Positions 27,252 to 53,691 of a DNA stretch of 64,000 nt are shown here, piece by piece (position 1 is the first letter of the stretch; each line of letters opens with the position of its first letter). Position numbers and translations under genes: made by a program. The notes below the pieces were generated by a model, which had not been told where the DNA came from, did no database searches, and saw only the letters and a list, made by a program, of their open reading frames with translations. The DNA is taken from the IMG/VR virus record IMGVR_UViG_3300043418_000072, positions 124,001 through 188,000 of that record; one strand, written 5' to 3'.

Positions 27252-27256
27252 GCTGT

Positions 27257-27494: not shown

Positions 27495-27495
27495 A

Positions 27496-30637: not shown

Positions 30638-30638
30638 A

Positions 30639-32391: not shown

Positions 32392-32392
32392 G

Positions 32393-32940: not shown

Positions 32941-32941
32941 A

Positions 32942-34263: not shown

Positions 34264-34481
34264 TAGCTCCACCTCAACACAAACATTGTAGCATCTTCTT
34301 CCCTGCGAAATTTAATCCATCCACCATGGCTATCCCAAGTGCCATTACCTAATGCTAGTCCCGGGTGACCGAATGTGGTCCAGCACCATCCGTATATTTC
34401 GCTCATCTCTGGACCTTGTGGACTGTAGTACATTTCCCACTCGTAGTATCGGTCCGGGCGATGTTTGAATTTAATATTCAT
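34263..34481 (-). CDS. W-cassette
   Basis: WCWTTFG, ends EEDATMFVLRWS. Confidence 0.8.
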   Translation of the reverse strand: MNIKFKHRPDRYYEWEMYYSPQGPEMSEIYGWCWTTFGHPGLALGNGTWDSHGGWIKFRREEDATMFVLRWS

Positions 34482-34897: not shown

Positions 34898-35084
34898 CTA
34901 GTGTTTTCTTTGCTATTTTTCCTGACGGATGATCTGGGTGCATACGTGCGATATCATCTAGTGCAGTCCACATCAACTCGTGTTCGTGTTGTTGCTGGTA
35001 TACCTTATCCCGCAAGCGACTGGCATCCATAATGCTTAGGACACCAGCAATTAACTTGGGAAGGATACGAGCAAGGAATTCCAA
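34869..35084 (-). CDS. Hypothetical protein
   Basis: Start uncertain; ends in TAG. Confidence 0.55.
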   Translation of the reverse strand: MEFLARILPKLIAGVLSIMDASRLRDKVYQQQHEHELMWTALDDIARMHPDHPSGKIAKKTLDEVTTRYGR

Positions 35085-35312
35085 TTATAAGTACTTCAAT
35101 CTAAACATTGTTTCTGCTGCGTCATTGAAGAAGTCTAAGTAGACAGTAGTGATGTAACCTGTTTGTTCTCGGTAAACCTGATGATGGCGGTCGGTGAATC
35201 CTAACTCACGCTTCATTACAGATCGCAAGAGCCAAACACTAGGCTTGTCTGCGTACTCAATTTTAATCTGAGCTCGGATCTTGCGCCACTCAGTATCGGT
35301 TAGTGTGATCAT
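35085..35312 (-). CDS. W-cassette
   Basis: Ends TMFRLKYL. Confidence 0.75.
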   Translation of the reverse strand: MITLTDTEWRKIRAQIKIEYADKPSVWLLRSVMKRELGFTDRHHQVYREQTGYITTVYLDFFNDAAETMFRLKYL

Positions 35313-35541
35313 ACTTTAACTTGAAAAAGGTTGCATCCTCATCTTTAAGTTTAGCAGTTACTCTGTAACGAAGAGAGTATGAGTGGTAATCGTTGCACTT
35401 GCTCCATTGCGGGGTTTCAATTGCATTAGCCATAACCCATTTCCCTGCATCACTTTGCTGCCATTCCCATAGAGGCCATGCGGCATAAAGGTCCGGGTCA
35501 TCAACATCCCCCACTGAAAATTCATGAACAGCTAGAGTCAC
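35290..35541 (-). CDS. W-cassette
   Basis: DEDATFFKLKY. Confidence 0.75.
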   Translation of the reverse strand: MTLAVHEFSVGDVDDPDLYAAWPLWEWQQSDAGKWVMANAIETPQWSKCNDYHSYSLRYRVTAKLKDEDATFFKLKYDHTNRY

Positions 35542-35720
35542 CGCCATTTTAATGCAAATAGTGTAGCATCAGAGGGACTAGAGAAATCAAACCTATACGT
35601 GGGATTGTTACCCAGCATACTGTTTAAGTCTATTGTCCATCCCTTAATACCAAATTGTTGTCTGCACCAGCCGCCCGCCTCAAGCGCCTTATCGGCACCA
35701 TTAATTGTGATAGAGTTCAT
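35538..35720 (-). CDS. W-cassette (first of array 1)
   Basis: WCRQQFG, ends LFALKWR. Confidence 0.8.
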   Translation of the reverse strand: MNSITINGADKALEAGGWCRQQFGIKGWTIDLNSMLGNNPTYRFDFSSPSDATLFALKWR

Positions 35721-35726
35721 AGTACT

Positions 35727-35755
35727 ATTATACACTAAATGCCTTTATGCGTCAA
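35727..35755 (-). promoter_or_regulatory. sigma70-type promoter heading W-array 1
   Basis: TTGACG-17-TATAAT. Confidence 0.8.
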
Positions 35756-36129
35756 AGTGATGTATTCTTGAGAGTATCCCAAGTTTTCATCTTTTCCTTG
35801 ATCTCTAATTCCAACTTGCGGTATTCGTCACCTAACCGTTTTAGTTCTGCCCATTCGGTTTCGAGTGAGACATCGGGTTTCAGCATGGCCAACCTTGATT
35901 CAAGGGCCTCTAGCGTATCCTTGAGACTCTTGCCGTTCATAACAATGTCTGCCTGTTCTCCGTTTAGCGTAATAGTCGCTTGCTGCGTAACTGTCATTGG
36001 ATTAGCGGCAGTGGTCCATGTGGTATTAGAGTATCCATTTGATCCACTAACTGAAAATGGATTAGCGACAGTAGTTGCGCCAGCAAATAAGTTGCCGGTA
36101 TGCTTGTGATTATTTAAAATGTATGCCAA
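35752..36129 (-). CDS. Hypothetical protein
   Basis: TTG start after GAGG; C-terminal coiled coil. Confidence 0.7.
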   Translation of the reverse strand: MAYILNNHKHTGNLFAGATTVANPFSVSGSNGYSNTTWTTAANPMTVTQQATITLNGEQADIVMNGKSLKDTLEALESRLAMLKPDVSLETEWAELKRLGDEYRKLELEIKEKMKTWDTLKNTSL

Positions 36130-36141
36130 AATTTACCTCGT

Positions 36142-36187
36142 AAAAAAGCCTATACCGCAGTATAGGCTTTGTGTTAACTAAAGTCAA
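36142..36187 (-). terminator. Intrinsic terminator overlapping a sigma70 promoter
   Basis: AAAGCCTATAC/GTATAGGCTTT stem plus U-run; TTGACT-17-TATACT at 36159-36187. Confidence 0.75.
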
Positions 36188-36191
36188 CAGG

Positions 36192-37034
36192 TTAGATATC
36201 AAATCCAAATGTTGGATCAAAGTCCTCTGCTTGCTGCTCATAGTTCTTGTAACCACGTGGGTTGCAAATAACACGAGTGTCACCAACCATGTAATCAAAC
36301 TGATGGTGTGTATGACCGTGTGTCCAAACTTTAATCTCAGGGTTGTCTAATATAAACTCACTGAGATCGCTGCTGTACGCACCATTCATAATGACATCGT
36401 CTGCGTAACGCGGATGAGTGCTCAACTTGCTCGGGCTGTGATGTGTACATACAACCACTGGCTTGTTACGGCCACTCATGCGGTTCTCACTCAGCTGCTG
36501 AGTAAAGTATTGTTTGGTCTTAATGTGCTCAGTTACAGTCTTTTCGGGCTGCAAGCGATGGTAAGCACCATTAGTCTCGTTCAGCATAGTTACCTGACGA
36601 TAGTCATTCATCATGCTCTTCATGTGGTACAAGGTAAGCTGATCATGGTTGTTCATGTCAGTCCACAGCGTTCCGCCTATAAACAACACACCGTCAATTT
36701 CGTACGTTTCTTTTTCAAGCAGATGCACGTTAGACGGCAACTGGCTCTTGATGTGATCATAGGTCTTATGGAACTGATAACCATAGTGCTCATGGTTGCC
36801 CATTACGTAAATGACTTCGCGGTACTTAGCGCACTCTTCCTCTAGGAAGCGACTGCACCGATCGGGGCGCTGGTCTTTACGCTCGTGCTCTAGCAATACC
36901 ATTGCTGGGTTGTAATCTTCTTTCTTGAAACGCTTGGCTTCGCAAACGTCGCCGCTGAGAATAAGTACATCGCCGCCGGGCAACGTCAAGTCTGCAAAAT
37001 CCAAGTGTAAATCACTCATTACGCTAACACGCAT
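36192..37034 (-). CDS. Calcineurin-like metallophosphoesterase
   Basis: SDLH, SGD, GNHE, HHSP, HGHTH. Confidence 0.9.
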   Translation of the reverse strand: MRVSVMSDLHLDFADLTLPGGDVLILSGDVCEAKRFKKEDYNPAMVLLEHERKDQRPDRCSRFLEEECAKYREVIYVMGNHEHYGYQFHKTYDHIKSQLPSNVHLLEKETYEIDGVLFIGGTLWTDMNNHDQLTLYHMKSMMNDYRQVTMLNETNGAYHRLQPEKTVTEHIKTKQYFTQQLSENRMSGRNKPVVVCTHHSPSKLSTHPRYADDVIMNGAYSSDLSEFILDNPEIKVWTHGHTHHQFDYMVGDTRVICNPRGYKNYEQQAEDFDPTFGFDI

Positions 37035-37057
37035 GATAGTTCCTTTAGTAATGTGCT

Positions 37058-37086
37058 ATTGTAGCACTATTCCAATTTCTTGTCAA
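37058..37086 (-). promoter_or_regulatory. sigma70-type promoter
   Basis: TTGACA-17-TACAAT. Confidence 0.8.
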
Positions 37087-37087
37087 G

Positions 37088-37112
37088 AGAAAAGGCCCTT
37101 GCGAGCCTTTTT
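37088..37112 (-). terminator. Intrinsic terminator
   Basis: AAAGGCTC-GCAA-GGGCCTTT, GNRA loop. Confidence 0.75.
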
Positions 37113-37126
37113 GGAGCAGTCTAGAA

Positions 37127-37414
37127 TTAGACCAAACCTTGTGCCATTGCTTTGTAAGCGATAGCAACCATTTTGCGGCTAGCTTCGCCGTAACGGTATT
37201 CAGTGACCTGAACGCCATTGCCTGCTTTACGGCTCTTGCCGTAAATGGCATAACCACGTTGACGGATTGCACTGATGGTAGCAGTTGGGTTAGCAATGCT
37301 GAAACGCTTGGCAATTTGTGCCTCGCTCAAAACTTCCTTGTCTAAGACCAATGCTTTGAACAATTTGCCTTGCTTAGTAGTTAAATCGAAACGCTTTAAG
37401 TTGATAGTTGTCAT
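37127..37414 (-). CDS. Winged-helix/HTH DNA-binding protein
   Basis: LSEAQIAKRF..NPTATISAIRQRGY. Confidence 0.65.
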   Translation of the reverse strand: MTTINLKRFDLTTKQGKLFKALVLDKEVLSEAQIAKRFSIANPTATISAIRQRGYAIYGKSRKAGNGVQVTEYRYGEASRKMVAIAYKAMAQGLV

Positions 37415-37504
37415 AATGTAATTTCCTTTAGTATTTGTTGTGTCTTGCACAACTGATTGTAGTATAGCAAAGTGCTATCTATAAGAACAAGAGTTATGGT
37501 AATC

Positions 37505-38068
37505 TTACTCGTTCTTGCTATCCAATGCAGCCCATCCTAGGCGGTGTAGGTCTTCTCGGATCTCGTCGGTAACACGACTTTCGGACACGTAGGCTTGTGA
37601 TTGCTTGTGATAGGCCAACTGCTCTTCTGTGTAATCTGCTAGTTCTTCGGGCGTTGCATCTCCGTTGCGAATACCGCTGCAATACCAATCAATGTAGTCG
37701 CCTTTTTCCTGCATATCGGCAACAATACCGCCGGCATAACGCCAAGAACAGCCCCAGGTCTTGCCTGTTAAGATAGGCCAAGTGTCTAGCTTCTGGAAGT
37801 CATTGTTGCACATGGCAGCATAGAGATTCTGTGCATACACATCATCGCTACGCACCTTTTCAAGGATCCAATCTGTTGTACGAAGATCGTACTCCATGTT
37901 GTCCTTTTGCCATTCGGGGTCTTGAGTTCTCAGGTCAGCTTTATGGTTCCACTCTTCGTAATGTTCAATCATTTGCAGGGCATCTTCGTCCGTTGGATCA
38001 ACCAACAGTTTGTCACGATAACTTTGAGCCTGAAAAGTATTACGCTCGGGACTTTTGCTAATAGTCAT
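37505..38068 (-). CDS. Conserved hypothetical protein
   Basis: YAQNLYAAMCNN, SWRYAGGIVAD, DYIDWYCSG. Confidence 0.75.
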   Translation of the reverse strand: MTISKSPERNTFQAQSYRDKLLVDPTDEDALQMIEHYEEWNHKADLRTQDPEWQKDNMEYDLRTTDWILEKVRSDDVYAQNLYAAMCNNDFQKLDTWPILTGKTWGCSWRYAGGIVADMQEKGDYIDWYCSGIRNGDATPEELADYTEEQLAYHKQSQAYVSESRVTDEIREDLHRLGWAALDSKNE

Positions 38069-38274
38069 TGCTTAGTTAGAAAGATAGTGCCATCATCACG
38101 AACATCCCACACCAGAGTATCGCCGATTGCCCATCCTTGTGCAGCAAGTAGTTCATCAGGAATGGGCATAACCAGGTCGTCCCCGTCTTCTTGTAAAGTA
38201 ACCACCCAAGAGTTCTTGCCAGTCTGTTCCCATTCTGGAGTTAGATCGCTTGGGTCAATCTTGCTTGTGGTCAT
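38065..38274 (-). CDS. AbrB/MazE-like protein
   Basis: DLVMPIPDELL..GW.IGDTL. Confidence 0.65.
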   Translation of the reverse strand: MTTSKIDPSDLTPEWEQTGKNSWVVTLQEDGDDLVMPIPDELLAAQGWAIGDTLVWDVRDDGTIFLTKQ

Positions 38275-38275
38275 A

Positions 38276-38503
38276 TCAGTCTTTGCTTACTGGCAAGCAG
38301 GTGCGGGCAGGAACTACACTAGTGTAGGTATCACCGATCTTTTCGTATAGCTTGCCTTCGATGCAGTACCAAACAGGCCCAGGGCGACTGTCTGCGTACT
38401 CCTTTGCAGCAGAGCCAATGGCCCAACCAATTATGGAACCACATCCCATTGAGACCACAATAAATGCGATCACATATAAAAAGCCTGCTACTGCGTCTTT
38501 CAT
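38276..38503 (-). CDS. Membrane protein
   Basis: N-terminal TM. Confidence 0.65.
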   Translation of the reverse strand: MKDAVAGFLYVIAFIVVSMGCGSIIGWAIGSAAKEYADSRPGPVWYCIEGKLYEKIGDTYTSVVPARTCLPVSKD

Positions 38504-38802
38504 GCAATCACCCGAATATGAGTAACGTTTTCAGTTCTAAAACTGCGCCATTCGCTTTTGTCTAAACACCAGGCACTAAGAGTCTTGTGGTTTAGCAATC
38601 GTGTTTCGTGTAGCTTAGTTGCATCACGAGCAGGCAATGCCTCTGCCTTTAGGGTACAAGGCATTGTTCGCACACTTCCATCTACTTTAGTGAAAGTGAC
38701 TTCGCATTGGTGTTCCCACAAGAGCTTTTGAATCTCTTTGTAACGGGTACCCAGCGCAAACTCATCGTCACCTAATGGGCCGAAAGTGTATTCTAGACTC
38801 AC
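38500..38802 (-). CDS. Sm/SH3-like (WYL_2-like) protein
   Basis: VTFTKVDGSVRTMPCTL, WRSFR. Confidence 0.7.
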   Translation of the reverse strand: MSLEYTFGPLGDDEFALGTRYKEIQKLLWEHQCEVTFTKVDGSVRTMPCTLKAEALPARDATKLHETRLLNHKTLSAWCLDKSEWRSFRTENVTHIRVIA

Positions 38803-38966
38803 TTAGAGTCCTTACGTGCGCCCTTTTGGCGAGCGTCAGCTTCAGCAATCTTTGTGAAGCTGCGGAGAAATGCTCCACGAACTTGCTTGTCTACAATAGT
38901 AGACGATGCCATCTTAACCAAGCTGGAGAGTTTCACAGCTTTAGAATCGTAACCTCTGCATGTCAT
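38799..38966 (-). CDS. Small basic protein (55 aa, not in track)
   Basis: MTCRGYDSKAVKLS...; AAGGA RBS. Confidence 0.6.
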   Translation of the reverse strand: MTCRGYDSKAVKLSSLVKMASSTIVDKQVRGAFLRSFTKIAEADARQKGARKDSK

Positions 38967-39016
38967 AATGTTTTCCTTTAAAAATGTATTATATAGGGAT
39001 GTTGAATTGTTGTCTA

Positions 39017-39370
39017 TTAAATGTTTGTGTCTCTTAACCGTTTCATAATCTCTTCACGCTCTAAAAGAAACGCTTTGAAAGCAATGGTTACCAATGTAAA
39101 CATGTAGTATGAAAGCACGGTCCAGAACCAAATCTTCACAGCAAGCACCGATGATGCAGTTTCGCCAGTGTAGACTAGCGAGCCTAATCCAACAGGTATG
39201 CACCCGGTTGCTAAAATCGCAGCGGTCATAAACGTGGTAAACCCTGGTTCTTTTATCAACGACTTGGCATATTCTATGTGGCGGCCTACGAAGTACATAC
39301 CAATTTTAGATAACGCCCAAAAGATAAACTCTTTCAGGATGCGGAGAGCATGTCCGATTTCTCGTATCAT
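39017..39370 (-). CDS. Membrane protein
   Basis: Hydrophobic segments. Confidence 0.65.
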   Translation of the reverse strand: MIREIGHALRILKEFIFWALSKIGMYFVGRHIEYAKSLIKEPGFTTFMTAAILATGCIPVGLGSLVYTGETASSVLAVKIWFWTVLSYYMFTLVTIAFKAFLLEREEIMKRLRDTNI

Positions 39371-39675
39371 TTCCACAGCTTTAGCATGTTAACAAATTCG
39401 GGCCACTCGTTTGGTTGGCGTGGTTTAAGCACAATGGCAACTTCTTGTCCATTTAGTCGACTCTCGGTTACTACCAAATGATCTTCTACAGTTTTCAGCA
39501 TAGCAAACTCCGCAGGAGTTACTGCACATGTTACTTTCTTGAAGCTATTACCGAGCCAGTCCAAGTAGTTGCCATCTTCGCAAAACTTCAAGTGACACAT
39601 AAGACCAGCATGTGCTGCGGAATTCATTGCCATGCCTGCAGGCAAGTCGTCTTTGATACAAATATACATTTTCAT
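39367..39675 (-). CDS. Peptidyl-tRNA hydrolase type 2-like protein
   Basis: KMYICIKDDL..G.....AHA, W....FKKV. Confidence 0.7.
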   Translation of the reverse strand: MKMYICIKDDLPAGMAMNSAAHAGLMCHLKFCEDGNYLDWLGNSFKKVTCAVTPAEFAMLKTVEDHLVVTESRLNGQEVAIVLKPRQPNEWPEFVNMLKLWK

Positions 39676-39803
39676 TCTTTATCTCCTTTAACACAAGAAA
39701 TTTTGTCCGGGCTATACATCAACACAAAGTTACCAATATTAAATGATCCTAAAATTGATAGGCATAACACAAATCCGCCAATTGCTGCAAGGAAGGTTTT
39801 CAT
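39672..39803 (-). CDS. Small membrane protein (43 aa, not in track)
   Basis: Starts at FGVEE junction. Confidence 0.6.
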   Translation of the reverse strand: MKTFLAAIGGFVLCLSILGSFNIGNFVLMYSPDKISCVKGDKE

Positions 39804-40123
39804 TCTTCAACTCCAAACTTTTTACTCAATCGTTCAAATTCGGCTTTTTCAGCTTCTTCACGTTTGCGGTCATACTCAGCTTGTTCAGCTAGGCGCTTGT
39901 TAAATTCTTCATCGTTTTCTTCACGCACTATATACAACTCATAACGAGGTGATGGGTCGTTATCGTAATCGTAATAGAAGTTTCGATTATAGTCAAGCCG
40001 TGCATCCGGTCCATGTTCTCGGATCATTGCCTGCACACGCTCCAACACTGTTGCTAGTGTACCTTCAAACTCCCATGTGGAGACATCGTCCACCATGTCG
40101 TTAATTTTTCTACGTTGGGTCAT
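39800..40123 (-). CDS. Hypothetical protein with FGVEE tail only
   Basis: Ends KKFGVEE. Confidence 0.75.
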   Translation of the reverse strand: MTQRRKINDMVDDVSTWEFEGTLATVLERVQAMIREHGPDARLDYNRNFYYDYDNDPSPRYELYIVREENDEEFNKRLAEQAEYDRKREEAEKAEFERLSKKFGVEE

Positions 40124-40147
40124 TCTTCAACTCCGAAGGCTTTATTG

Positions 40148-40444
40148 CTACACAAATGCGATGCCCGATGACATAACGGCATAAACATCACAGGCGTTAT
40201 CAGTAAAAATGCCTCTTACTAGGTAACTTTCTTTTTCTGTTCCTACCATCAGTTTTGGCTCAAATGTATCACGATCCAATACCGTGCATTCAACATTTTC
40301 CGCAATAACTCTGTAATAGTTAGATGCTTTAGTAACTACCTGTTCTGTTACGGGTTTGCCATAATTATCAAAGGTAATTTCTTCGTAATGGTTGTAGATA
40401 TCATCTAATACACCCTGTGGGATTTCTTCACGATTTATAATCAT
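40148..40444 (-). CDS. Hypothetical protein
   Basis: Ends in TAG; followed by orphan FGVEE repeat. Confidence 0.7.
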   Translation of the reverse strand: MIINREEIPQGVLDDIYNHYEEITFDNYGKPVTEQVVTKASNYYRVIAENVECTVLDRDTFEPKLMVGTEKESYLVRGIFTDNACDVYAVMSSGIAFV

Positions 40445-40695
40445 TATTCAACTCCAAAATGTTCTTTTATATCGTTCGCACACAACATCGCACCATCAGT
40501 CACTGAACCTAAAATTCCCTTATAAGCACGGTCGTAGCACAACTTAGCACATTCCCGAACAATCAACTCGGCGAACTTTTCTAATCCGGGATTATCTGGA
40601 TCTTCTTGCCACATAGGCAATTCTTTACCCAAAGAATTCCATAATCTTTGTTTCAATCCTGCCTGTTCAGCAAGTTGTTTAATTCGTTCGTTCAT
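40444..40695 (-). CDS. MNERI...HFGVE family protein
   Basis: MNERIKQLAEQAG, FAELIVREC. Confidence 0.8.
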   Translation of the reverse strand: MNERIKQLAEQAGLKQRLWNSLGKELPMWQEDPDNPGLEKFAELIVRECAKLCYDRAYKGILGSVTDGAMLCANDIKEHFGVE

Positions 40696-40952
40696 TCTTC
40701 AACTCCGAAATGTTCTTTAATCCTGTCTTTGATAACTTCAGAAACATTGCCATTGATACCATCTTCACGAGTATACCAAACCTGCTCCAAACATTCTTTC
40801 ACCAGCAGTCGGGCGAATTGTTCCACATCCATGTCGCCACCGTGAACAAACTTGTGTCCTGTGTAGACACTATCACCGTTAGCTTGTTCAACATAGCCAC
40901 CCTGCCAGATACCACCTGATTGGATGGCAAGTTCGTTTATACGCTTGTTCAT
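40692..40952 (-). CDS. MNERI...HFGVEE family protein
   Basis: MNKRINELA, FARLLVKEC. Confidence 0.8.
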   Translation of the reverse strand: MNKRINELAIQSGGIWQGGYVEQANGDSVYTGHKFVHGGDMDVEQFARLLVKECLEQVWYTREDGINGNVSEVIKDRIKEHFGVEE

Positions 40953-41191
40953 ACGTGCTTTACATAAGTTAGGTCGGGATCAATGGTCCAATGCGGAACT
41001 GCATCTTCTCTTCGCAGTCTGCCTTCGGTGTGCATTTTGATAACTAGATACACTTTGCGGTCAGCGTTCCACGTATCATAATCAACAATGGTTCCAAGTT
41101 GGGCATCAGTGCCCTGTTTAACAACCACATTGTCATTGAGTTTGTACTGCGCCATTACCAGGCGATTGCGGTGGAAAATTTCAGGCGTCAT
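40949..41191 (-). CDS. Hypothetical protein
   Basis: Coupled ORF. Confidence 0.65.
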   Translation of the reverse strand: MTPEIFHRNRLVMAQYKLNDNVVVKQGTDAQLGTIVDYDTWNADRKVYLVIKMHTEGRLRREDAVPHWTIDPDLTYVKHV

Positions 41192-41455
41192 TTAGTAATC
41201 TCAAAAGTTTTTGCAGCATACTCGTAACGAGCAGCACATTGACGCCACGCATCAGCAAACAACCAATCGGCAAGAGTTTGAATCATTTGTATTCCTTGGC
41301 TAGTGCGTCGAATGTTTCTTGCTTACGGTCATTGAGATAACACTGTGCTATAAACAACATCTGATAAGCGTGGTCTTCACTACTAGGTAGAACAAAACTG
41401 CGGCCTTCGTACAGTTCTTGTAGCTTTAACTCAAGCTCGTAATCAGTATACGGTA

Positions 41456-42772
41456 TCACAGTTTCTCACCTTTAGCAAAGCCGCGCCATGTTTTAAAACG
41501 TGGGAATCGCAAGCTGTAGACATCAGTACTGTCTTGATTCAGCGTGGCAGCATCTGCACGAACTTCGCCTACATCGCCTACGACAGATTCTGGCGTATTA
41601 CGAGCAGTCCAAATGTCTGCACGATCCTTATCACTCCAGCCGCCGCCAACACTTACGCGGATGAACTTTCCGTCGTCTGTGCCTTCAAACAACACTGCAC
41701 CCATCTTGCCCACGTTCTTGCCAGTACCTTCTTCGATGGCAACCGCAGTCAATGACACTTCAATGAAAGGCTTGATTTTGAGCCAGCTCACTGTGCGCTT
41801 GCACTCGTAAACTGCATTGGGTTCTTTAAGCATAATGCCTTCGTAACCTGCTGCAATAGCTTGTGCATTGATCTCTTTGAAACGTGCATAGCCTTCTGGG
41901 GTATCGAGATCCACATCTTCTTGACCCACAACAGTGACGTTGGGCATGTGATCTTCGCAAGGAGTAAACCAAGCCAACAGATCCACGCTGCGTTCTGCTT
42001 GTGTACGTGAACCCACGCCTGCTTGAAACTCGTCGAGTGGGATGATGTCAAACAAGTTAAGTACCGCATCATCTGCGTTGACGTTGGTCTTGCGCTTGGC
42101 CTGCTTCATCAAGTCTTGGAAGCTGGCGCTCATGATCTCGCCGTCTAGTACCATTGGCTCTCGAAAGAACTTGGCGTGCTTGGCAATTTGTTGTTTAACA
42201 ACTTCGAAGTTGACCAGCTCTTTGCCGTTACGGCTGTATTGATCAACTTGACCTGTTGGGTAAACAATGGTAAGCACACGCATACCGTCCAGCTTGACTT
42301 CGATTGTTTTGTGGCCTTTGATTTTGCTTTCGTGCTTGGCACCATCGTGTGCAAGCTGGCATTCAAACACTGGCACATGGTATTTGGGATCAGCAACTTT
42401 GTTAACAATGCTGTCGCTAGCACCGCAGCGCATGTCCTTGATCAAGATGCGACGATACCAGTTGTTCCACTCGTCTTCTGTTGCTTGCATACGCAAGAAG
42501 TTGATAGCAGTTTGAGCAGCGCCACCTGTGAGTTCACGTTCTGCAAGTTTGCGGGCAATGTCCCAAAATGCGTCAGAGCTGATACCAGGACCGTCGCCAG
42601 TTTTGACGTCAACTTTCTTAACACCAAATGTCACCATTGCATCGTATGCAGCACGAAAACCCCGAAACACTTCTGTGTTACTGGCTTTGCTCTCACGGGC
42701 AATAACTGCTTCCTTGAACAGGCGGCTGTTGTCACTTTCGAGTTCTGCGATTACGTCCCATGGCTTGATCAT
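41456..42772 (-). CDS. lig: ATP-dependent DNA ligase
   Basis: KLDG motif I, LDGE, EGIMLK, WLKIK, SLRFPRF. Confidence 0.95.
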   Translation of the reverse strand: MIKPWDVIAELESDNSRLFKEAVIARESKASNTEVFRGFRAAYDAMVTFGVKKVDVKTGDGPGISSDAFWDIARKLAERELTGGAAQTAINFLRMQATEDEWNNWYRRILIKDMRCGASDSIVNKVADPKYHVPVFECQLAHDGAKHESKIKGHKTIEVKLDGMRVLTIVYPTGQVDQYSRNGKELVNFEVVKQQIAKHAKFFREPMVLDGEIMSASFQDLMKQAKRKTNVNADDAVLNLFDIIPLDEFQAGVGSRTQAERSVDLLAWFTPCEDHMPNVTVVGQEDVDLDTPEGYARFKEINAQAIAAGYEGIMLKEPNAVYECKRTVSWLKIKPFIEVSLTAVAIEEGTGKNVGKMGAVLFEGTDDGKFIRVSVGGGWSDKDRADIWTARNTPESVVGDVGEVRADAATLNQDSTDVYSLRFPRFKTWRGFAKGEKL

Positions 42773-42802
42773 TTGTGTTCCTTTGTTTCGTTCTATGTGT
42801 AT

Positions 42803-42831
42803 ATTATAGCACCAAAATCATTATGGTGCAA
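42803..42831 (-). promoter_or_regulatory. sigma70-type early promoter
   Basis: TTGCAC-17-TATAAT; flanks near-identical to 9489. Confidence 0.8.
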
Positions 42832-42836
42832 CCATT

Positions 42837-43103
42837 TTACATGTTTTCTTCTGGGCAACCGGCCCACAAATCCTTGAGATATTCTTCGCGCTTTACTGCT
42901 GCTGCACGGAAAGCGTTGGCAGTTACTTGGCTAACATCAACTTCAATATACTGGTTGTGCCACATCTGCTCTGCAAAGTCTGCCAAATCGGCAGCAATTT
43001 TTTCATCAGTCCAAGCTGCTTTTTCACGTGCCTCGCTGGGCCAAGACGCATCTTCCATGATGTTCTTCAAAATGGTTTTTGGTTGATTCATTTTGCGTGT
43101 CAT
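42837..43103 (-). CDS. Hypothetical protein
   Basis: Own promoter and RBS. Confidence 0.7.
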   Translation of the reverse strand: MTRKMNQPKTILKNIMEDASWPSEAREKAAWTDEKIAADLADFAEQMWHNQYIEVDVSQVTANAFRAAAVKREEYLKDLWAGCPEENM

Positions 43104-43133
43104 TTCGGGTCCTGTTTTGCTTGCTATGTGTAT

Positions 43134-43162
43134 ATTATACAAACAAAATCATTTATTGTCAA
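43134..43162 (-). promoter_or_regulatory. sigma70-type early promoter
   Basis: TTGACA-17-TATAAT. Confidence 0.9.
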
Positions 43163-43174
43163 GTTTTGGGCAAA

Positions 43175-43579
43175 TTAGTTTTTGTAGAGAACCGCAACTT
43201 TGGGGTAAGTACAACCTTCGCAACTTTGAAACAACACCCGGTCGTTGCCAATTTCATACTCTACATAGGTGTAGTGGCGATCCACATAGCTCTTACCAGA
43301 CTTTTCACGCGAACCTTCAGCAACGAATCCAACTAATGTACCAGTAACCTGTGTATTTTTGTAGTACTTTGTACTCTGGTCTGTCCACTCATAACTAACC
43401 ATGTAAGCAATTCCTACTGGAATCAACAAGATTAAAAGTACATTAAACAATTTGTATTCTTCTTCACCAGTGATATTAGAGTAAGCTGCCATCAAAAATA
43501 CAACTAACATGAATACACAAACGATAACGAAACCTTTGTGGTCAGTTACAATTGGTGCTAGTGGTTGCATTGTGTACAT
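43175..43579 (-). CDS. Membrane protein
   Basis: Two TM segments. Confidence 0.75.
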   Translation of the reverse strand: MYTMQPLAPIVTDHKGFVIVCVFMLVVFLMAAYSNITGEEEYKLFNVLLILLIPVGIAYMVSYEWTDQSTKYYKNTQVTGTLVGFVAEGSREKSGKSYVDRHYTYVEYEIGNDRVLFQSCEGCTYPKVAVLYKN

Positions 43580-43607
43580 GATAGTCCTGTTTGCTTGCTA
43601 TGTGTAT

Positions 43608-43636
43608 ATTATACAACCAAAACCATTATTGGACAA
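43608..43636 (-). promoter_or_regulatory. sigma70-type early promoter
   Basis: TTGTCC-17-TATAAT; shared leader. Confidence 0.75.
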
Positions 43637-43659
43637 CCAAAATTAGTACTACAAAAGTA

Positions 43660-43989
43660 TTAGTTTTGTAATGCCGCCCACATGTGTTTCTTTTCTAGGC
43701 GCTCAATGAATAGTGTGCGCACACGGTCTTGATCATTTAGCCAGTCTTGTACTACTGCTGGATTGCCCCAACACATGTTAGGTGCCACATTAGACATCCA
43801 TTTAGCAATCGGGACTAGGTGATCCTTGTTAACCGAGTCACAACGGCATGCTGCCGCAGTAAAATTGTTTTCCAATACTGCCTTTAAAAACCCGCCTGGC
43901 ATGTATCCGCGGATAATATAATCCTCAAACGCATCTTGCGTGTGACTTGGTACATTGTAGTGTTCCCACTCTAGCCATCGTTTTGTCAT
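43660..43989 (-). CDS. Conserved phage hypothetical protein
   Basis: YIIRGYMPGGFLKAVLENN. Confidence 0.75.
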   Translation of the reverse strand: MTKRWLEWEHYNVPSHTQDAFEDYIIRGYMPGGFLKAVLENNFTAAACRCDSVNKDHLVPIAKWMSNVAPNMCWGNPAVVQDWLNDQDRVRTLFIERLEKKHMWAALQN

Positions 43990-43990
43990 T

Positions 43991-44170
43991 CTAACTCCAT
44001 TTTAAAACAAACATCATTTCATCCTCGGGCGTGTCAAACTCAACCATAAAGTACAAGTAATCGTCTTTACGGTAGCTGTCATGAAAATGCCCATTGGGAA
44101 TATCACTGAGCCCGCTTTCAATCATGCGTTGCTGAATGTTGACCCAGTCAATCATACGGTACGTTAACAT
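43991..44170 (-). CDS. W-cassette (59 aa, not in track)
   Basis: ...VEFDTPEDEMMFVLKWS-TAG. Confidence 0.75.
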   Translation of the reverse strand: MLTYRMIDWVNIQQRMIESGLSDIPNGHFHDSYRKDDYLYFMVEFDTPEDEMMFVLKWS

Positions 44171-44171
44171 G

Positions 44172-44462
44172 TCATGCCCACTTTAGTAAGAACCAAGCAT
44201 ACTTTTGCTCGTCGAGCACTGTGGTGATAACCCTCTGTCCACTATTGTGATAGCGATACTCAAACCCATGCACATGTTTACACCATTCCCCAAAACCAAA
44301 GTCTGTGACTGTATCTTTAATCTCAGGCCACTGGCTCCATGCGTTTTGAATTGCAGTTAGTGCTTGATCCTTTGGTGCCATTATTTCCTTACAGAGGTTT
44401 GTGCCGTAGACGCTGTTTAGTTGCATCTTGCGATGCAATTTTGCCCATTCTTCTTTAGTCAT
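44172..44462 (-). CDS. W-cassette; N-terminal PolB motif B-like peptide
   Basis: RKMQLNSVYG; ends WFLLKWA. Confidence 0.8.
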   Translation of the reverse strand: MTKEEWAKLHRKMQLNSVYGTNLCKEIMAPKDQALTAIQNAWSQWPEIKDTVTDFGFGEWCKHVHGFEYRYHNSGQRVITTVLDEQKYAWFLLKWA

Positions 44463-44665
44463 GCAAACCTCAATGCAAACATGGTAGCATATTTTTCATC
44501 AGAAAAATACCAGTCAGACCATTCACCTTCACCGGTTTCCCACACATAAAACCACTCACCTCCATACTCGCCAATATTTTTTTCGCACCACTTAACTCTA
44601 GCCTCAGTGCGTTCATGGTGCCATCCATAGAGTCTGACTTCGGTCATTGGTTCACTTAATGTCAT
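44459..44665 (-). CDS. W-cassette
   Basis: WCEKNIG, ends MFALRFA. Confidence 0.8.
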   Translation of the reverse strand: MTLSEPMTEVRLYGWHHERTEARVKWCEKNIGEYGGEWFYVWETGEGEWSDWYFSDEKYATMFALRFA

Positions 44666-44856
44666 AGCCACCTCAATGCAAACAGTGTAGCATCTTCTTC
44701 TTTATGAAACCAAAATGTTCGGATAGTGTCCCATGCCCGACGCTTGCCATTAGGTTCCGGTGGTCCAAAGTTATCCAAGCACCACTTCCACGCGACCTGT
44801 GTACCACTTTCCCCGTATACATCACGAAGTTTCTTGCTGATTTTAATTTCAATCAT
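44662..44856 (-). CDS. W-cassette
   Basis: WCLDNFGP, ends LFALRWL. Confidence 0.8.
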   Translation of the reverse strand: MIEIKISKKLRDVYGESGTQVAWKWCLDNFGPPEPNGKRRAWDTIRTFWFHKEEDATLFALRWL

Positions 44857-45101
44857 GACCACCTCAACATAAACCAAGAGTACAATTCTTCGTCTTCAAA
44901 CTCGATCCAGTGCAGAACACTACTTTCAAATAAGTTGCCCACCTCTTCCATGTAGTACACTGCACGGTACTCAACCAGTGCTGCATTAACATAAGCGTCG
45001 GTTACTGCCTGTGGTCCCACTTGTTCTTGCAGGTGTGCAACAAATTTGTTCCACACAGGGATAGGTGCATAGTCTTTAACAAGATCCAATCGTATCATCA
45101 A
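44853..45101 (-). CDS. W-cassette
   Basis: Ends WFMLRWS. Confidence 0.8.
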   Translation of the reverse strand: MMIRLDLVKDYAPIPVWNKFVAHLQEQVGPQAVTDAYVNAALVEYRAVYYMEEVGNLFESSVLHWIEFEDEELYSWFMLRWS

Positions 45102-45265
45102 AACCTCAGCGCAAACTCTGTGGCTTTTAACGGGTCACGAAAACGAAAGTCCCAGCCACAGCCATCAGAACTGCACACCCAATCATTATAGTCGAGATTG
45201 GCATGGCACCATTCTGCCCCGCTGGTGTAATCATCAATTGTTACTATTGCCCATTTCGCCATCAT
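45098..45265 (-). CDS. W-cassette
   Basis: Ends EFALRF. Confidence 0.75.
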   Translation of the reverse strand: MMAKWAIVTIDDYTSGAEWCHANLDYNDWVCSSDGCGWDFRFRDPLKATEFALRF

Positions 45266-45543
45266 AAGTGCCTTAATGTAAACATAATTAGATTTTCTTC
45301 TTCGAAGAAGTCTGCATAACGCTTGCTGTATTCTGTATAAATGCGGCCACCACATGACCAAACATAATGATCAAACGCTTGACCAGCACCATAACGTAAG
45401 TTAAGTCGATCAAAGTGGTCAATCCAATGTCCCGAGGTCTTATACCCATTGTTTGCAGCCCACTTCTGGAAGATAGTGTTTAGCTGGTCGGATTCAATAC
45501 GTGCCTTTTTCATAAGGGAGTCTCTTGTATATTGCTTTTTCAT
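45262..45543 (-). CDS. W-cassette
   Basis: Ends MFTLRHL. Confidence 0.75.
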   Translation of the reverse strand: MKKQYTRDSLMKKARIESDQLNTIFQKWAANNGYKTSGHWIDHFDRLNLRYGAGQAFDHYVWSCGGRIYTEYSKRYADFFEEENLIMFTLRHL

Positions 45544-45740
45544 TTATGGATCAATGCAAACATTATAGCATCTTTTTCATTTTCGAAGTAAACGCCATGT
45601 CCTCCCATGCTAAAATGTCCGATTCCATCAAACTCTTCGCACCAAAGCAATGCCTCTATCCAACCAATGGTTTTTTGGTTTTCAGATAATGGAATGTATG
45701 TGTAGTCGCAATCCATTAGCATAGTTAGCTCTTGCTTCAT
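45540..45740 (-). CDS. W-cassette
   Basis: FENEKDAIMFAL. Confidence 0.75.
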   Translation of the reverse strand: MKQELTMLMDCDYTYIPLSENQKTIGWIEALLWCEEFDGIGHFSMGGHGVYFENEKDAIMFALIHK

Positions 45741-45967
45741 GACCACCTCAACATAAACATTGTCATGTGTTGTTCGTCAGGAAACGATACCCACAACTCG
45801 GGTTTGCGACCAACTGGTCCAACCTTAACAACATTGTAGTCTTGCTTGAGCCAATCCCAAATAGTTATGTGATGCCCGTCGTTGTTGTGTATGTCACGAC
45901 CAATGTTGTCCCAGTAGTAATTGGCAATCTTCTGAAAGTATGGGCGAATGTCTTTGCGTAGTTTCAT
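45737..45967 (-). CDS. W-cassette
   Basis: Ends MFMLRWS; close to 46433. Confidence 0.8.
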   Translation of the reverse strand: MKLRKDIRPYFQKIANYYWDNIGRDIHNNDGHHITIWDWLKQDYNVVKVGPVGRKPELWVSFPDEQHMTMFMLRWS

Positions 45968-46215
45968 GACCACCTCAACACAAACATGGTATAGTCGTGC
46001 TCGTCTTTGAAGGTCACTACAAATCTATACCCACTGTCTTTACCTTCAATACAAGCACCGACTTGAGCAATTTCTTCTTCAAGGATATGGTCCACCAATG
46101 CCGGAGGTGCGGACTTTTTAGTAATACGGCGTGCCCATACATCTGCATACCAACGCTCGAAGTAATTCCTGGGTTGTTTACAGTTGATGTTTTGGTAATA
46201 CTCTTTTACAATCAT
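45964..46215 (-). CDS. W-cassette
   Basis: Ends MFVLRWS. Confidence 0.8.
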   Translation of the reverse strand: MIVKEYYQNINCKQPRNYFERWYADVWARRITKKSAPPALVDHILEEEIAQVGACIEGKDSGYRFVVTFKDEHDYTMFVLRWS

Positions 46216-46436
46216 GACCACCTCAACACAAAGTAAGTTAAATCTTGTTCAGTGCTAAACACAATGCACTTGGTTTCGTTATTCCAGTGTGCATTGTAGT
46301 CTCTGAGAAACTCTTCTCCCGAGAGGGGAGCACGGCGGGTCTTCATCATCTCAGGTTCTATCACTGCTCTATAGAAGTTTTTGTATGCCATTGGGCTTTG
46401 GTCGTAATCGTCGGATATGTAAAGAGTTGTACTCAT
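46212..46436 (-). CDS. W-cassette
   Basis: Ends YFVLRWS. Confidence 0.8.
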   Translation of the reverse strand: MSTTLYISDDYDQSPMAYKNFYRAVIEPEMMKTRRAPLSGEEFLRDYNAHWNNETKCIVFSTEQDLTYFVLRWS

Positions 46437-46645
46437 GACCACCTCAGTATAAACCAATTGAGTGTTTTCTCATCGGGAAATGACACCACTATCTGCTGGC
46501 TGGCTGCACTGCCAAAAGTGTGGCTAATACCGTACTCACGGCCAAGCCAATCCCAGACACTAATATTAGACTTGTATAGATCATCCCAATAGTGGTTAGC
46601 AACCTTCTTGAAGTAGGGATAGATGTCTGCATAGATTTTAGTCAT
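46433..46645 (-). CDS. W-cassette
   Basis: Ends WFILRWS. Confidence 0.8.
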   Translation of the reverse strand: MTKIYADIYPYFKKVANHYWDDLYKSNISVWDWLGREYGISHTFGSAASQQIVVSFPDEKTLNWFILRWS

Positions 46646-46926
46646 GCCCACCTCAACAAGAATACTGCACGATCACGCTCGTACTTGAAGAAGATTGTTT
46701 CAAATCTCCAGATCCAGTCACGCCCAAAATGTTCTTCACACCACAGCATAACTTCTTCAAACGGTGCGGCACCATTAAACTGCCAGCAGGAGAAACAGTG
46801 ACACACAATATTAACGGCATCTGCGTCATTGGTGTACAGGCAAGGAGTCTCTGCAACAAACTCACGCAGGCGCAGGCGAAGAGTGCCGTAGATTGAATCA
46901 ATTTGCAGTGTGTCTTTTACTATCAT
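46642..46926 (-). CDS. W-cassette
   Basis: WCEEHFG, ends VFLLRWA. Confidence 0.8.
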   Translation of the reverse strand: MIVKDTLQIDSIYGTLRLRLREFVAETPCLYTNDADAVNIVCHCFSCWQFNGAAPFEEVMLWCEEHFGRDWIWRFETIFFKYERDRAVFLLRWA

Positions 46927-47144
46927 GAAAATCTCAACATAAACAACAAATAGTCGTGCTCATTCTCAAAGTAGAACTTGGTAGTCTCTGGATCTTTATC
47001 AATGGCGTTCCATTCGGATAGTGCCTGCGTGATAGAGTCGGCCTCATTGAAATCGTACCCTTGTGTTTCGGCATAGTCGCGAAAGTTTTCCCACCAATGC
47101 TTGCGTCCAGTGCCAGTTTCAGAGTCGATGTCTAGCTCAATCAT
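46923..47144 (-). CDS. W-cassette
   Basis: Ends LFMLRFS. Confidence 0.8.
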   Translation of the reverse strand: MIELDIDSETGTGRKHWWENFRDYAETQGYDFNEADSITQALSEWNAIDKDPETTKFYFENEHDYLLFMLRFS

Positions 47145-47371
47145 GACATTCTCAGTAAAAACATTACATAATCTCGTTCGTTGTTGAACACTAGAAAATT
47201 CTCTCTAGTACGCCAACTCCACTCACGCTCGGCATTAAACTCTTGTTTGACAAAGTCGAAAAACTGCATTTGAATTTTTCCAGTAGCAGTCATGTGCTTT
47301 ACAATTTTAACATTGTAATCATTTTCTGTCACAGCCACTCGATATTGCTTACGCCAGAACCGCCAGTTCAT
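47141..47371 (-). CDS. W-cassette
   Basis: Ends MFLLRMS. Confidence 0.8.
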   Translation of the reverse strand: MNWRFWRKQYRVAVTENDYNVKIVKHMTATGKIQMQFFDFVKQEFNAEREWSWRTRENFLVFNNERDYVMFLLRMS

Positions 47372-47577
47372 GAGTACTTGATCCTAAAAAATATGTATAA
47401 CTGCTCGTCGTGAAACTTGACATTATAAGTGTACTTGGCTTTGCTTTTGGCAACAGTTGCCTTCCACTTAGTTAGTTCTGTACGAATGTGTTCTTGCCCA
47501 CCAGCTGCATCAACAAAGTTGCAGAAGTAGGCATCACCGTTGCGGCCACCATAGTAATGATACTGACGTTTAATCAT
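47368..47577 (-). CDS. W-cassette
   Basis: Ends FFRIKYS. Confidence 0.75.
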   Translation of the reverse strand: MIKRQYHYYGGRNGDAYFCNFVDAAGGQEHIRTELTKWKATVAKSKAKYTYNVKFHDEQLYIFFRIKYS

Positions 47578-50517: not shown

Positions 50518-51921
50518 TTATTTCATGCTGTTAGCACGAACTTGTTCGAAAGTGATTTCGTTAAACAATGCACCGTTCTGGAAAACAGTTTGCAATGCTT
50601 CAGTCCAACCACCAATGCCTTTGTCGCTCCAACCAGTAGGGGCTTGCACACTTGTTGAAAACTCGCCACCACTGTTGGTCCACAACTTAACACGGCCTTT
50701 GAGTGATGCTTTGCCACTGTCAGTGATGGGGTCTTTGTAAACATCAACCCATTCACCGTTGACACATGCACTGGAACATTTCATAGCCCACTTCTGTGTA
50801 TCACGATCAATAGCTTGCAGCAAAGCACCACCCATACCAAATGCAAAGTTATCTGCTGACCAACCTTGGAAATCAACCATAGTGCGCAAGATGCTTTGGA
50901 TGCTAACAGTGTTGATACCATCGCCCCAGATCATGCGTACATTGTTGAGTACCTTGTAGCCCTTGTCATTGGTAGTGTATCCAAAGCCTTCTGCAAGAAT
51001 TGCAATCATCTTTGGCATGACTTCAACAGGATCACCTGAGTCAGGACGGATAACAACTGTGGCACCTGAATCAATCACTTGCTGTTTCAAGTCACCAGTA
51101 CTCCACATTTTACATGCTTCGTAGATGTTGTAGCTGTCACTAACAACTGCAACAATACCGCCTGGCTTACCAAACTGTGTGACCATGTTGCTGTAGGCGT
51201 TCAGTTCACCTGCACGACCCCAACTAGTGATAGTACTGTGCTCGGCAGCTGGAATTGAAAAACCTGCGATGCCAGCATTGTAATATTCGCGAGCGTACAG
51301 TACACCAGTAATAGTGTCGGTACCCATGAAGTTGACCAAGTGGGCCGCACCCCCAATACCAGCACTCTCCATTGAAGATACACCACGAGCACCAAAATCG
51401 TGCAGTTTAAAACCGATAGTAGTAGGATCACCAGATTTCTCCAAGTATTCTTGCAAGATGTTTTTAATGTACTTGCTTTGTGTTGAGACTGTAGTTGGGT
51501 ACCAGACTGCACGAAGCAATGGAGTTTCCAACCATGTGGTTAAACCGTGGCACTTGGGGTCAGTGTTTTCGATTGTGACCAGTGCGTTTCCAACTGGGAC
51601 AACAGTGCCTTCTGGTACGGCTTTAATGACCACGGGCAAGTAGCCGTTGTGTGCTTCGACGATGTAGTCCCACATGGTGCGGTCGAATGGTTCGCCGTGT
51701 GCTGTGAGGATTTCTTCTGCGATGTCAACGTCGGCTTTTGTAATTGGGTCAAGTAAATACTCCTTGAAGAAAATTTGCAGTCCAACAACTTGTGTGAATG
51801 TGAATTTGCCGCCGCGGGCTGCAATGTAGCTGAATACATTAGTAGTGCCAGCTGGGTATTGAGGCGCCATACTAACTTTGTAGCTGTCAGTATTGAGAAT
51901 GATGTTTTTAGAGAGTTTCAT
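50518..51921 (-). CDS. nadV: Nicotinamide phosphoribosyltransferase
   Basis: TDSYK, LHDFGARG, AAEHS, VSDSY, IRPDSG. Confidence 0.95.
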   Translation of the reverse strand: MKLSKNIILNTDSYKVSMAPQYPAGTTNVFSYIAARGGKFTFTQVVGLQIFFKEYLLDPITKADVDIAEEILTAHGEPFDRTMWDYIVEAHNGYLPVVIKAVPEGTVVPVGNALVTIENTDPKCHGLTTWLETPLLRAVWYPTTVSTQSKYIKNILQEYLEKSGDPTTIGFKLHDFGARGVSSMESAGIGGAAHLVNFMGTDTITGVLYAREYYNAGIAGFSIPAAEHSTITSWGRAGELNAYSNMVTQFGKPGGIVAVVSDSYNIYEACKMWSTGDLKQQVIDSGATVVIRPDSGDPVEVMPKMIAILAEGFGYTTNDKGYKVLNNVRMIWGDGINTVSIQSILRTMVDFQGWSADNFAFGMGGALLQAIDRDTQKWAMKCSSACVNGEWVDVYKDPITDSGKASLKGRVKLWTNSGGEFSTSVQAPTGWSDKGIGGWTEALQTVFQNGALFNEITFEQVRANSMK

Positions 51922-52461: not shown

Positions 52462-52679
52462 TATAACTCCACTCTTTCAAAGTAAATCTTGGCAAAGCCC
52501 ATGGGGCTTGTTGCACGGCGTTCAATTTGTAGATACAAACGTGTCGGAGTATCCTCTAACACATGGTGCACCACAATCTGATCCATGGTATCGTTAAACA
52601 CTTGAGTCCTAACTTGTTCAGCTAAGAACAGTTGTTGACTACGCCGGGGTTGATAGTTGCTCTTGTGCATCTTAAACAC
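52461..52679 (-). CDS. Hypothetical protein
   Basis: Coupled ORF. Confidence 0.6.
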   Translation of the reverse strand: MFKMHKSNYQPRRSQQLFLAEQVRTQVFNDTMDQIVVHHVLEDTPTRLYLQIERRATSPMGFAKIYFERVEL

Positions 52680-53691
52680 CTACCGCCCATTGGACCATAT
52701 CGTAGTGGTCTTCAAAACACTCGTCGCTACGCACTTCTGCAATAGGAACCCAACGTGCTTTCTCTGCATCGTCACTGCCTTTTACTTTAGGCAATGCACC
52801 ATCAGGCAATTCAATCTTGTAGCAATGAGTAATGATACGACCACGTGGTGAACGATCAACAGCATCAAACACACGGTTGCCCGTAATGCTACCACGCAAC
52901 ACTGGCTCAGGTACTTTGATACCAGTTTCTTCACGGAGTTCGCGAATAGCTGCATCAAGTACGGTCTTGTCGGTGCTGGCGTTAACGTAACCACCAGGCA
53001 GTGCCCACAAGCCACGACCTGGCTCAGCACGGCGTTTGATCATAAGCACATGGCCTGAGCAAATTACTGCGGCATCTGCTGTGCTAAAGATTGGAGGGTA
53101 CTTCAAGCTGGCATATTGCTTGTTGTGTTCAATCAAGAATTCACGCTCACGGATAATCTGTGCAAATTCCTCAGTCTTACGAAAATTCATCAAGAAGTCA
53201 TAAGTTGATTGAGGTACAACATTCTTAATAAAGTTGCTGTTGAAGGTCCAGTTAAAGAACAGGTCACGAATGTTCACTGCACTAAGTGGTTCAATTTCCT
53301 CTACATCAACATAGCCCCATTGGGGGAACATGTCCAAGTAGAAACTTGATTCGTCTTTCTTGTGACCAATGATGGCAGTTTTAGTACCCAGGATTCGATA
53401 CTTGCTGACAATACCTTGCACACGAACTGCCCACGCTTGGTCGTTGTACATTGTATCAATGTTTTCTTCAATGTGAATACTCATTGCAAGACCACTTGTT
53501 GCAGCCTTAATCATTTGAGCACGTTCGGCACTGGTGAAGGGGTTTTTGTAAGTGCGGGGTTGAGCAGCTGAGCCTGTGATAATTACCAGATTGTCGGTCA
53601 ATGCTGTGGCTCGCTTGATAATCTCTAAGTGAGCATTGTGGAAGGGTTGAAAACGTCCGATGAGGACTAGTGTTCCGTATTCTTTAGACAT
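52672..53691 (-). CDS. nadM: Bifunctional NMN adenylyltransferase / Nudix ADPR pyrophosphatase
   Basis: GRFQPFHNAH, KNPF, Nudix box PGG...RELREETG. Confidence 0.95.
   Translation of the reverse strand: MSKEYGTLVLIGRFQPFHNAHLEIIKRATALTDNLVIITGSAAQPRTYKNPFTSAERAQMIKAATSGLAMSIHIEENIDTMYNDQAWAVRVQGIVSKYRILGTKTAIIGHKKDESSFYLDMFPQWGYVDVEEIEPLSAVNIRDLFFNWTFNSNFIKNVVPQSTYDFLMNFRKTEEFAQIIREREFLIEHNKQYASLKYPPIFSTADAAVICSGHVLMIKRRAEPGRGLWALPGGYVNASTDKTVLDAAIRELREETGIKVPEPVLRGSITGNRVFDAVDRSPRGRIITHCYKIELPDGALPKVKGSDDAEKARWVPIAEVRSDECFEDHYDMVQWAVGV

Follow-up and report, generated by a model that had tools for sequence, protein, structure and literature searches.

The question raised by this locus is why a small phage ORF should begin with a peptide resembling motif B of family B DNA polymerases (PolB), and whether this likeness has anything to do with the polymerase itself. 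The window analyzed here is a stretch of 64,000 nucleotides, bases 124001-188000 of the 354,098-bp IMG/VR virus record IMGVR_UViG_3300043418_000072. An initial annotation of its sequence reported a peptide at the N-terminus of a repeated cassette that matches the PolB pattern K-x3-N-S-x-Y-G with 6 of 10 identities to the RB69 enzyme, including all invariant positions, and proposed that together with a second cassette at 26773 both nucleotide-binding motifs of PolB appear on separate cassettes. The analysis below confirms that the peptide is present and conserved, whereas its interpretation as a polymerase motif is only partly supported. The peptide belongs to the predicted first helix of a 96-residue protein from a huge uncharacterized family, whose members carry short copies of conserved stretches of the capsid protein, probably the terminase, and possibly the DNA polymerase.

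The polymerase-like peptide

The peptide LHRKMQLNSVYG forms residues 9-20 of the ORF, whose ATG overlaps the stop codon of the upstream ORF (Table 1), and the complete pattern is read as KMQLNSVYG at residues 12-20. Compared with the T4-type polymerase in the PDB (RKILINSLYG), 6 of 10 residues are identical, including K, N, S, Y, and G, and the remaining positions are conservative. The same number is identical to the phage's own polymerase (KKINLNSLYG). In the six-frame translation of the whole record K-x3-N-S-x-Y-G occurs twice, in the true polymerase and here, whereas random Markov-1 genomes of the same size give 0.125 occurrences on average. One unrelated hit to the pattern was observed in about 850,000 residues of non-family ORFs, in a membrane protein at L043:14517-14894 (here and below, L numbers denote collected viral loci, and P numbers denote relatives of the 96-residue protein). 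A chance origin of the peptide is therefore unlikely but not excluded. The companion claim also holds, as the second cassette does begin with DISSMYPS, matching motif A (DINSLYPS in the phage's own polymerase).

The phage has an intact family B polymerase of 889 amino acids, encoded outside the window (101883-104552 of the record, minus strand), with motif A, motif B, and motif C (YGDTDS), which is the only full set of these motifs in the genome. Its nearest named relatives are the polymerases of Sinorhizobium phage Phosso (52%), Agrobacterium phage Atu_ph07 (48%), and the Rak2/GAP32 group (about 43%), and thus the genome is a T4-superfamily jumbo phage known only from metagenomes.

Table 1. 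Features of the window (window coordinates)
Feature	Coordinates	Strand	Description
ORF with the motif-B-like peptide	44172-44462	-	96 aa; family HMM E 1.5e-12; core at residues 57-95
Motif-B-like peptide	44403-44438	-	residues 9-20, at the end of the predicted N-terminal helix
Linker TNLCKEI	44382-44402	-	residues 21-27; the same linker follows terminase-type modules in sister cassettes
Array 1	26773-35735	-	about 20 ORFs of the family, including the four module cassettes below
Array 2	43991-47577	-	about 17 head-to-tail ORFs of the family, most joined by the junction repeat
Junction repeat	28362-46655	-	13 sites
Motif-A cassette	26773-27045	-	DISSMYPS at 27004-27027
Capsid N-arm cassette	27496-27894	-	residues 10-37 (27784-27867) match the start of the Pfam Gp23 profile
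Capsid spine cassette	29324-29662	-	Gp23 profile positions 124-194; the mechanically listed 156-aa ORF (29324-29794) starts too early, its first 44 residues overlapping the upstream cassette; likely start at the ATG at 29662, which overlaps the upstream stop
Terminase-like cassette	29659-30084	-	N-terminal piece ending in GGRQTGKST
Paired small ORFs	40444-40695 and 40692-40952		adjacent; shared N-terminal start and C-terminal ending IKEHFGVE; a second, separate small paralogous pair
ATP-dependent DNA ligase	41456-42772		beside the paired small ORFs
NAD salvage genes	50518-51921 and 52672-53691		nicotinamide phosphoribosyltransferase (NAMPT) and a cytidylyltransferase-like plus Nudix fusion (NadR-like), next to the arrays
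Large proteins of unknown role	18954-21389 and 59487-61934		811 aa with a He_PIG Ig-like domain, and 815 aa with an Amidoligase_2 domain

Relationship to the DNA polymerase gene

Alignment of both protein and DNA to the phage pol gene had been proposed in advance as a check of the motif, and it revealed no DNA or extended protein similarity to the gene. Around the motif 37 of 90 bases are identical. In the motif-A cassette, the one in which codons were compared with pol, the two Ser codons are AGC where pol has TCG. The protein similarity does not extend beyond about 10-13 residues. The best Smith-Waterman segment of the ORF against pol is not the motif but residues 41-64 against pol 605-627 (p about 0.06), which overlaps the family's own core helix and was rejected as chance. 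BLAST of the N-terminal parts of all 35 family members of this phage against its own proteome found nothing above shuffled controls, and phmmer of 777 family members against the 242 large proteins of the phage found nothing. These results reject long captured fragments of the phage's own genes, except for the capsid pieces, whose parent gene is cut off by the end of the record.

Profile searches were equally negative. The ORF has no Pfam hit at E up to 1 and no meaningful hit in PHROGs, and a search of the whole genome with the PolB profile (PF00136) at E up to 10 finds the true gene but not the cassettes. The 96-residue chain holds neither motif A (D-x2-S-L-Y-P-S) nor motif C and has no exonuclease, palm, or thumb domain. 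Searches of the PDB with two profiles (A1 and A2) found no polymerase and no significant hit, and megablast of the array and tblastn of the ORF against 50,697 phage records found no match. The first 40 residues found only their own cluster among 1.84 billion representative sequences, and therefore the module is not the start of a split polymerase elsewhere. An intein or extein remnant was rejected, since there are no splice-junction residues and pol is intact. Thus, the ORF is neither a polymerase nor a piece of the pol gene. A weak PolB-profile match was found elsewhere in the record (339067-339225, E 0.008, profile positions 142-196), with one TGA and two TAG stops inside, which could be chance or a decayed polymerase fragment.

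A large family of small viral proteins

A C-terminal pattern (F-x-F, an acidic turn, then D-A-x-x-F-x-L-R/K-W-S/A) marks 32 ORFs in the genome, and a profile HMM raises this number to 35. All are on the minus strand in the two tandem arrays, apart from one member just beyond the right edge of the window. The ORF with the motif-B-like peptide is one of them, in a translationally coupled array with 17 neighbors on the same strand. The junction TGAGGTGGTCATGA, in which the last codons TTG AGG TGG TCA TGA (L-R-W-S and stop) hold the Shine-Dalgarno sequence and the overlapping ATG of the next gene, occurs 13 times in the window against 0.34 expected. Part of the conserved protein C-terminus may be constrained by this translational coupling signal.

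From 86 viral loci (1.48 Mb) we collected 858 members, 777 of them unique, with up to 39 per 20-kb locus. They share a C-terminal core of about 45 residues, which in the AlphaFold2 model is predicted to form a helix, two strands, and a helix (pLDDT about 90 in the deeper alignment) and ends in F-x-L-R/K-W. In the 96-residue protein the predicted elements are helix 3-16, a disordered stretch at 20-29, helix 57-65, strands 67-71 and 78-82, and helix 85-95. The N-terminus has low confidence, although its predicted helical state agrees with that of motif B in the polymerase fingers. Foldseek of the core against the PDB found nothing, a wider structural search (VIA wide) gave only common alpha/beta arrangements (best Z 5.3), and BFVD and the ESM Atlas returned only uncharacterized viral proteins. 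The latter include proteins of Agrobacterium phage Atu_ph07 and Pseudomonas phage PA5oct, matched by fold. All collected relatives are metagenomic, and the host is unknown.

Tandem, translationally coupled small ORFs of unknown function among nucleotide-metabolism genes are also a feature of the hyperplastic regions of T4-like and jumbo phages. The present family differs in its size (35 copies per genome), in its single shared core, and in the recurrent N-terminal pieces taken from hallmark proteins. It has no Pfam or functional PHROG assignment, and literature searches found no description of it.

N-terminal modules resembling hallmark phage proteins

Other members of the family carry true pieces of hallmark proteins, among them two different capsid pieces. 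The capsid N-arm cassette matches Pfam Gp23 above the curated cut-off (27.6 bits, residues 10-37 on profile positions 5-32), as do its counterparts L003:6585-6977 (34.3 bits), L006:1787-2185, and L020:9911-10231 (26.3 bits). In the PDB this stretch maps to residues 96-123 of T4 gp23, in the most conserved part of the protein. A second type, represented by the spine cassette and its relatives, matches a different part of the same profile. Of 87 long members from other loci, 17 match Pfam Gp23 (best E 1e-12) and 17 match the PHROG major head protein (best E 1e-13). The phage's own gp23 N-terminus was not compared, since the record ends inside the major capsid gene (353941-354096 of the record), where only Gp23 profile positions 304-354 are present and the N-terminal 300 positions are missing. 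The extra gp23-like copies in the arrays might contribute to such assembly breaks. A third type begins with a stretch that has the terminase Q-motif and Walker A at the right spacing (L045:3388-3795, L043:10593-10979, and the terminase-like cassette of the window). Pfam and PHROGs detect neither the terminase-like nor the PolB-like modules, and a Pfam Terminase_6N search of the genome finds only the true TerL. These two assignments rest on motif-level profile matches.

To test the short modules without bias, we compared each module profile with all 341 proteins of at least 100 residues in this phage. Each module ranks its supposed parent first and at the right site: the motif-A module at pol 389-400 (P 5.5e-5), the terminase-like module at TerL 62-90 (P 1.8e-4), and the motif-B module at pol 539-551 (P 1.6e-3). 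The second-best match of the motif-A profile is a 382-residue protein (285967-287115 of the record, NDVYSAYPWQ at residues 39-50, P 4e-4), which is probably chance. For motif B the margin is narrow, as the next best protein scores 2.6e-3, and after correction for 341 proteins the match is not significant (E about 0.5). Top rank and weak score together leave it undecided whether the likeness of this module to pol has statistical support. In the family as a whole, the motif-A pattern occurs 14.3 times per 1e5 residues against 0.47 outside it, and the motif-B pattern 5.7 against 0.47. Residue shuffles of the 777 members predict 0.02-0.03 hits, whereas 8 and 4 are observed.

About 8% of members carry a recognizable module. 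Among the 777 unique members there are 15 with the capsid N-arm, 28 with the capsid spine, 11 terminase-like, 8 motif-A-like, and 4 motif-B-like. In every case the number of loci equals the number of members, so that a locus never holds two modules of the same type. The modules sit on different core clusters. One core type is found with motif A (L028:12532-12882), motif B (L005:7268-7621), or the capsid piece (L018:3274-3657), and the core of the motif-A cassette is found with motif A, with the capsid piece, with both, or with neither. The tandem case is the 106-residue cassette L020:9911-10231, where a gp23 piece ending in GVQPM is followed directly by a motif-A-like DSDVNSMYP. Between different core clusters the modules are 50-58% identical, whereas the cores are 37-38% identical. 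In the window four module cassettes lie within 3.4 kb (26773-30084).

It could be argued that these pieces are neutral relics, captured in frame when arrays of small ORFs recombine illegitimately, and that only pieces with famous motifs are recognized, so that the pattern reflects what can be detected rather than a function. The high plasticity of the arrays, the presence or absence of modules among orthologs, the small fraction of members with a recognizable module, and the lack of a known partner or phenotype agree with this view. However, the modules are more conserved than the diverged cores that carry them, their boundaries are constant across 15 and 28 loci, no type is repeated within a locus, and codons drift synonymously while the residues invariant in the parent protein stay fixed, which are exactly the residues that neutral fragments in a new context should lose. 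We consider this explanation unlikely.

Conservation of the motif-B-like peptide and its terminase-type relatives

Conservation in orthologs was the other criterion set beforehand for the motif, and here the outcome is positive. Twelve relatives of the 96-residue protein were found in metagenomes, and nine carry the module. Across the three diverged versions (the P0001 group, P0010, and P0009) all four x positions vary (M/I, Q/L, L/K, V/I/K), while K, N, S, Y, and G never do. The chance that four changes avoid the five motif positions is about 1 in 126. Two relatives (P0011 and L093) lack the N-terminal extension, and two (P0007 and P0008) carry a different one. The same 27-residue N-terminus also sits on a clearly different core in L005:7268-7621. 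The motif-A-like peptide is conserved in about 21 of 40 relatives of its cassette as M-x-D-x-D-[IV]-[NST]-S-M-Y-P, and the rest lack the extension. Its codons vary synonymously (Asp GAT/GAC, Pro CCA/CCT/CCG, Ser AGC/AGT/TCA), and thus selection acts on the peptide and not on the DNA. For the same reason, and because Ser uses different codon families, DNA-level explanations (a copy of a homing-endonuclease target, a recombination arm, or a promoter inside the coding sequence) were rejected.

Motif B is nevertheless the weakest case among the modules, since sister cassettes connect this stretch to terminase-type N-termini. L032:8691-9098 has GRQSGKSMLNQIYN followed by the linker TNLCKEI, a Walker A continued by MLNQIYN (GKSMLNQIYN-TNLCKEI). 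It is identical to the stretch studied here at 12 of 17 positions, with the motif Lys on the Walker A Lys. L017 and L025 read KILKNRIYD-SNLCKEI at the same place. Three of the five motif residues (K, N, and Y) therefore pre-exist behind a terminase-type Walker A in relatives where S and G are not kept. Moreover, P0007 and P0008, orthologs with the same core, carry a terminase-type N-terminus, and P0009 begins like a terminase Q-motif helix. Accordingly, the N-terminal helix may derive from, or have replaced, a terminase-type module, with the PolB pattern completed by two substitutions and no relation to the polymerase. The marginal profile match and the chance hit in a membrane ORF are in agreement with this possibility, which we regard as a serious though still doubtful alternative. 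It is opposed by the fixation of all five invariant positions, by pol being the top hit of the whole proteome, and by the conserved motif-A-like module and true capsid pieces in the same family. Since tandem modules exist, a terminase piece followed by a decayed motif-B piece would fit the L017 and L025 data equally well. We put the odds that the peptide is a genuine polymerase-B module at roughly even.

Possible role of the modules

The analysis itself demonstrates that the peptide is the N-terminal part of an accessory protein that is one of at least 35 tandem paralogs in this phage, and that in this virus-only family the N-terminus is a swappable module, conserved as a peptide with free synonymous change, moving between cores, able to stand in tandem, and occurring at most once per type per locus. 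That the motif-B-like helix is one of the hallmark-motif modules rather than a coincidence, and that the modules act at the protein level as mimics of conserved epitopes read by some other factor on capsid protein, terminase, and polymerase, is our inference. In this view the modules do what the same stretches do, or are recognized for, in the parent proteins, and would be decoys or competitors. We assign this main reading a probability of about 0.4. The likeliest such factors are host abortive-infection sensors of the Lit/Gol, CapRel, or Avs kind, and the small core would serve as a stable display scaffold. The position in a small-ORF array suggests early synthesis, although the timing was not examined.

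The supposed parents are the proteins that bacterial sensors read: Lit and CapRel recognize short capsid motifs, and Avs families sense terminase, polymerase, helicase, and capsid proteins (10.64898/2026.01.04.697583), with capsid protein read by several Avs families, terminase by Avs1-3, and polymerase by Avs19. The Gol peptide, which activates the Lit protease through EF-Tu, is described as a 29-residue region in the first quarter of gp23 that is the most conserved part of the protein and binds EF-Tu (PMC3014915). Gol lies at about residues 93-122 of gp23. The capsid N-arm cassette carries a free-standing copy of the most conserved gp23 stretch, but as the N-terminus of a separate small protein fused to an unrelated core. 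Binding to EF-Tu and effects on Lit-type proteases were not assayed, and a complex prediction of E. coli EF-Tu with residues 1-60 of this cassette gave no verdict and is not evidence either way. The proposed logic is that of phage anti-defense proteins that compete with the trigger of a sensor, such as DSAD1 against DSR2 (PMC11087589), or act as mimics, such as Ocr, in that a small phage protein occupies the site where an immune sensor reads a conserved phage component. These examples, however, are not built from a fragment of the trigger itself, no function has been tested and no sensor, partner, binding, or phenotype is known for the present family, and literature searches found no trigger-fragment decoys. 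In addition, motifs A and B and the Walker A are active-site elements in folded enzymes rather than surface epitopes, and it is not apparent what would read them as free peptides.

In its boldest form, which we consider unlikely but not excluded, the family would be a phage-encoded library of peptide decoys, each member displaying on a common miniature scaffold one of the few unmutatable epitopes of the virus: the capsid N-arm (Gol region), the capsid spine helix, the terminase Walker A, and polymerase motifs A and B. Each genome would keep one decoy of each type to blunt host sensors or rival elements, and the motif-B-like helix would be the polymerase-B member of the set. How phages escape such sensors without mutating essential motifs is largely open, and this abundant family provides concrete, clonable candidates for an escape route. 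If that is wrong, its members are still an unreported way in which phages recycle fragments of their core genes.

Alternatively, the modules could be dominant-negative or targeting pieces, which either poison the homologous machines of co-infecting rival phages or satellites, or dock the small protein onto the phage's own procapsid or packaging motor. The capsid pieces cover the N-arm and spine-helix region, which form subunit contacts in HK97-fold capsids, in some members the piece starts close to the mature gp23 N-terminus (the T4 sequence was not aligned for this comparison), and each type occurs once per genome. On the other hand, motifs A and B and the Walker A are intramolecular elements and not interfaces, and the phage's own proteins carry the same motifs and would be poisoned too. 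No virion proteomics is available, and this explanation appears improbable.

Independently of function, free-standing copies of the gp23 and gp43 signature peptides can confuse marker-gene surveys and annotation, as the precomputed Pfam hits on related contigs already mark several of these 120-130-residue proteins as Gp23.

Neighboring genes in related phages

The arrangement of NAD salvage genes next to the arrays is the same in related phages (L003 and L008). In L003 a 358-residue AAA ATPase (L003:1735-2811) with weak precomputed nSTAND3 and faint NACHT hits lies between the NAMPT gene and the array. Other related phages carry eIF-1a-like, Fe-superoxide dismutase, rubrerythrin, and WYL_2 genes close to the arrays (L006:5106-5889 and L007:16737-19967).
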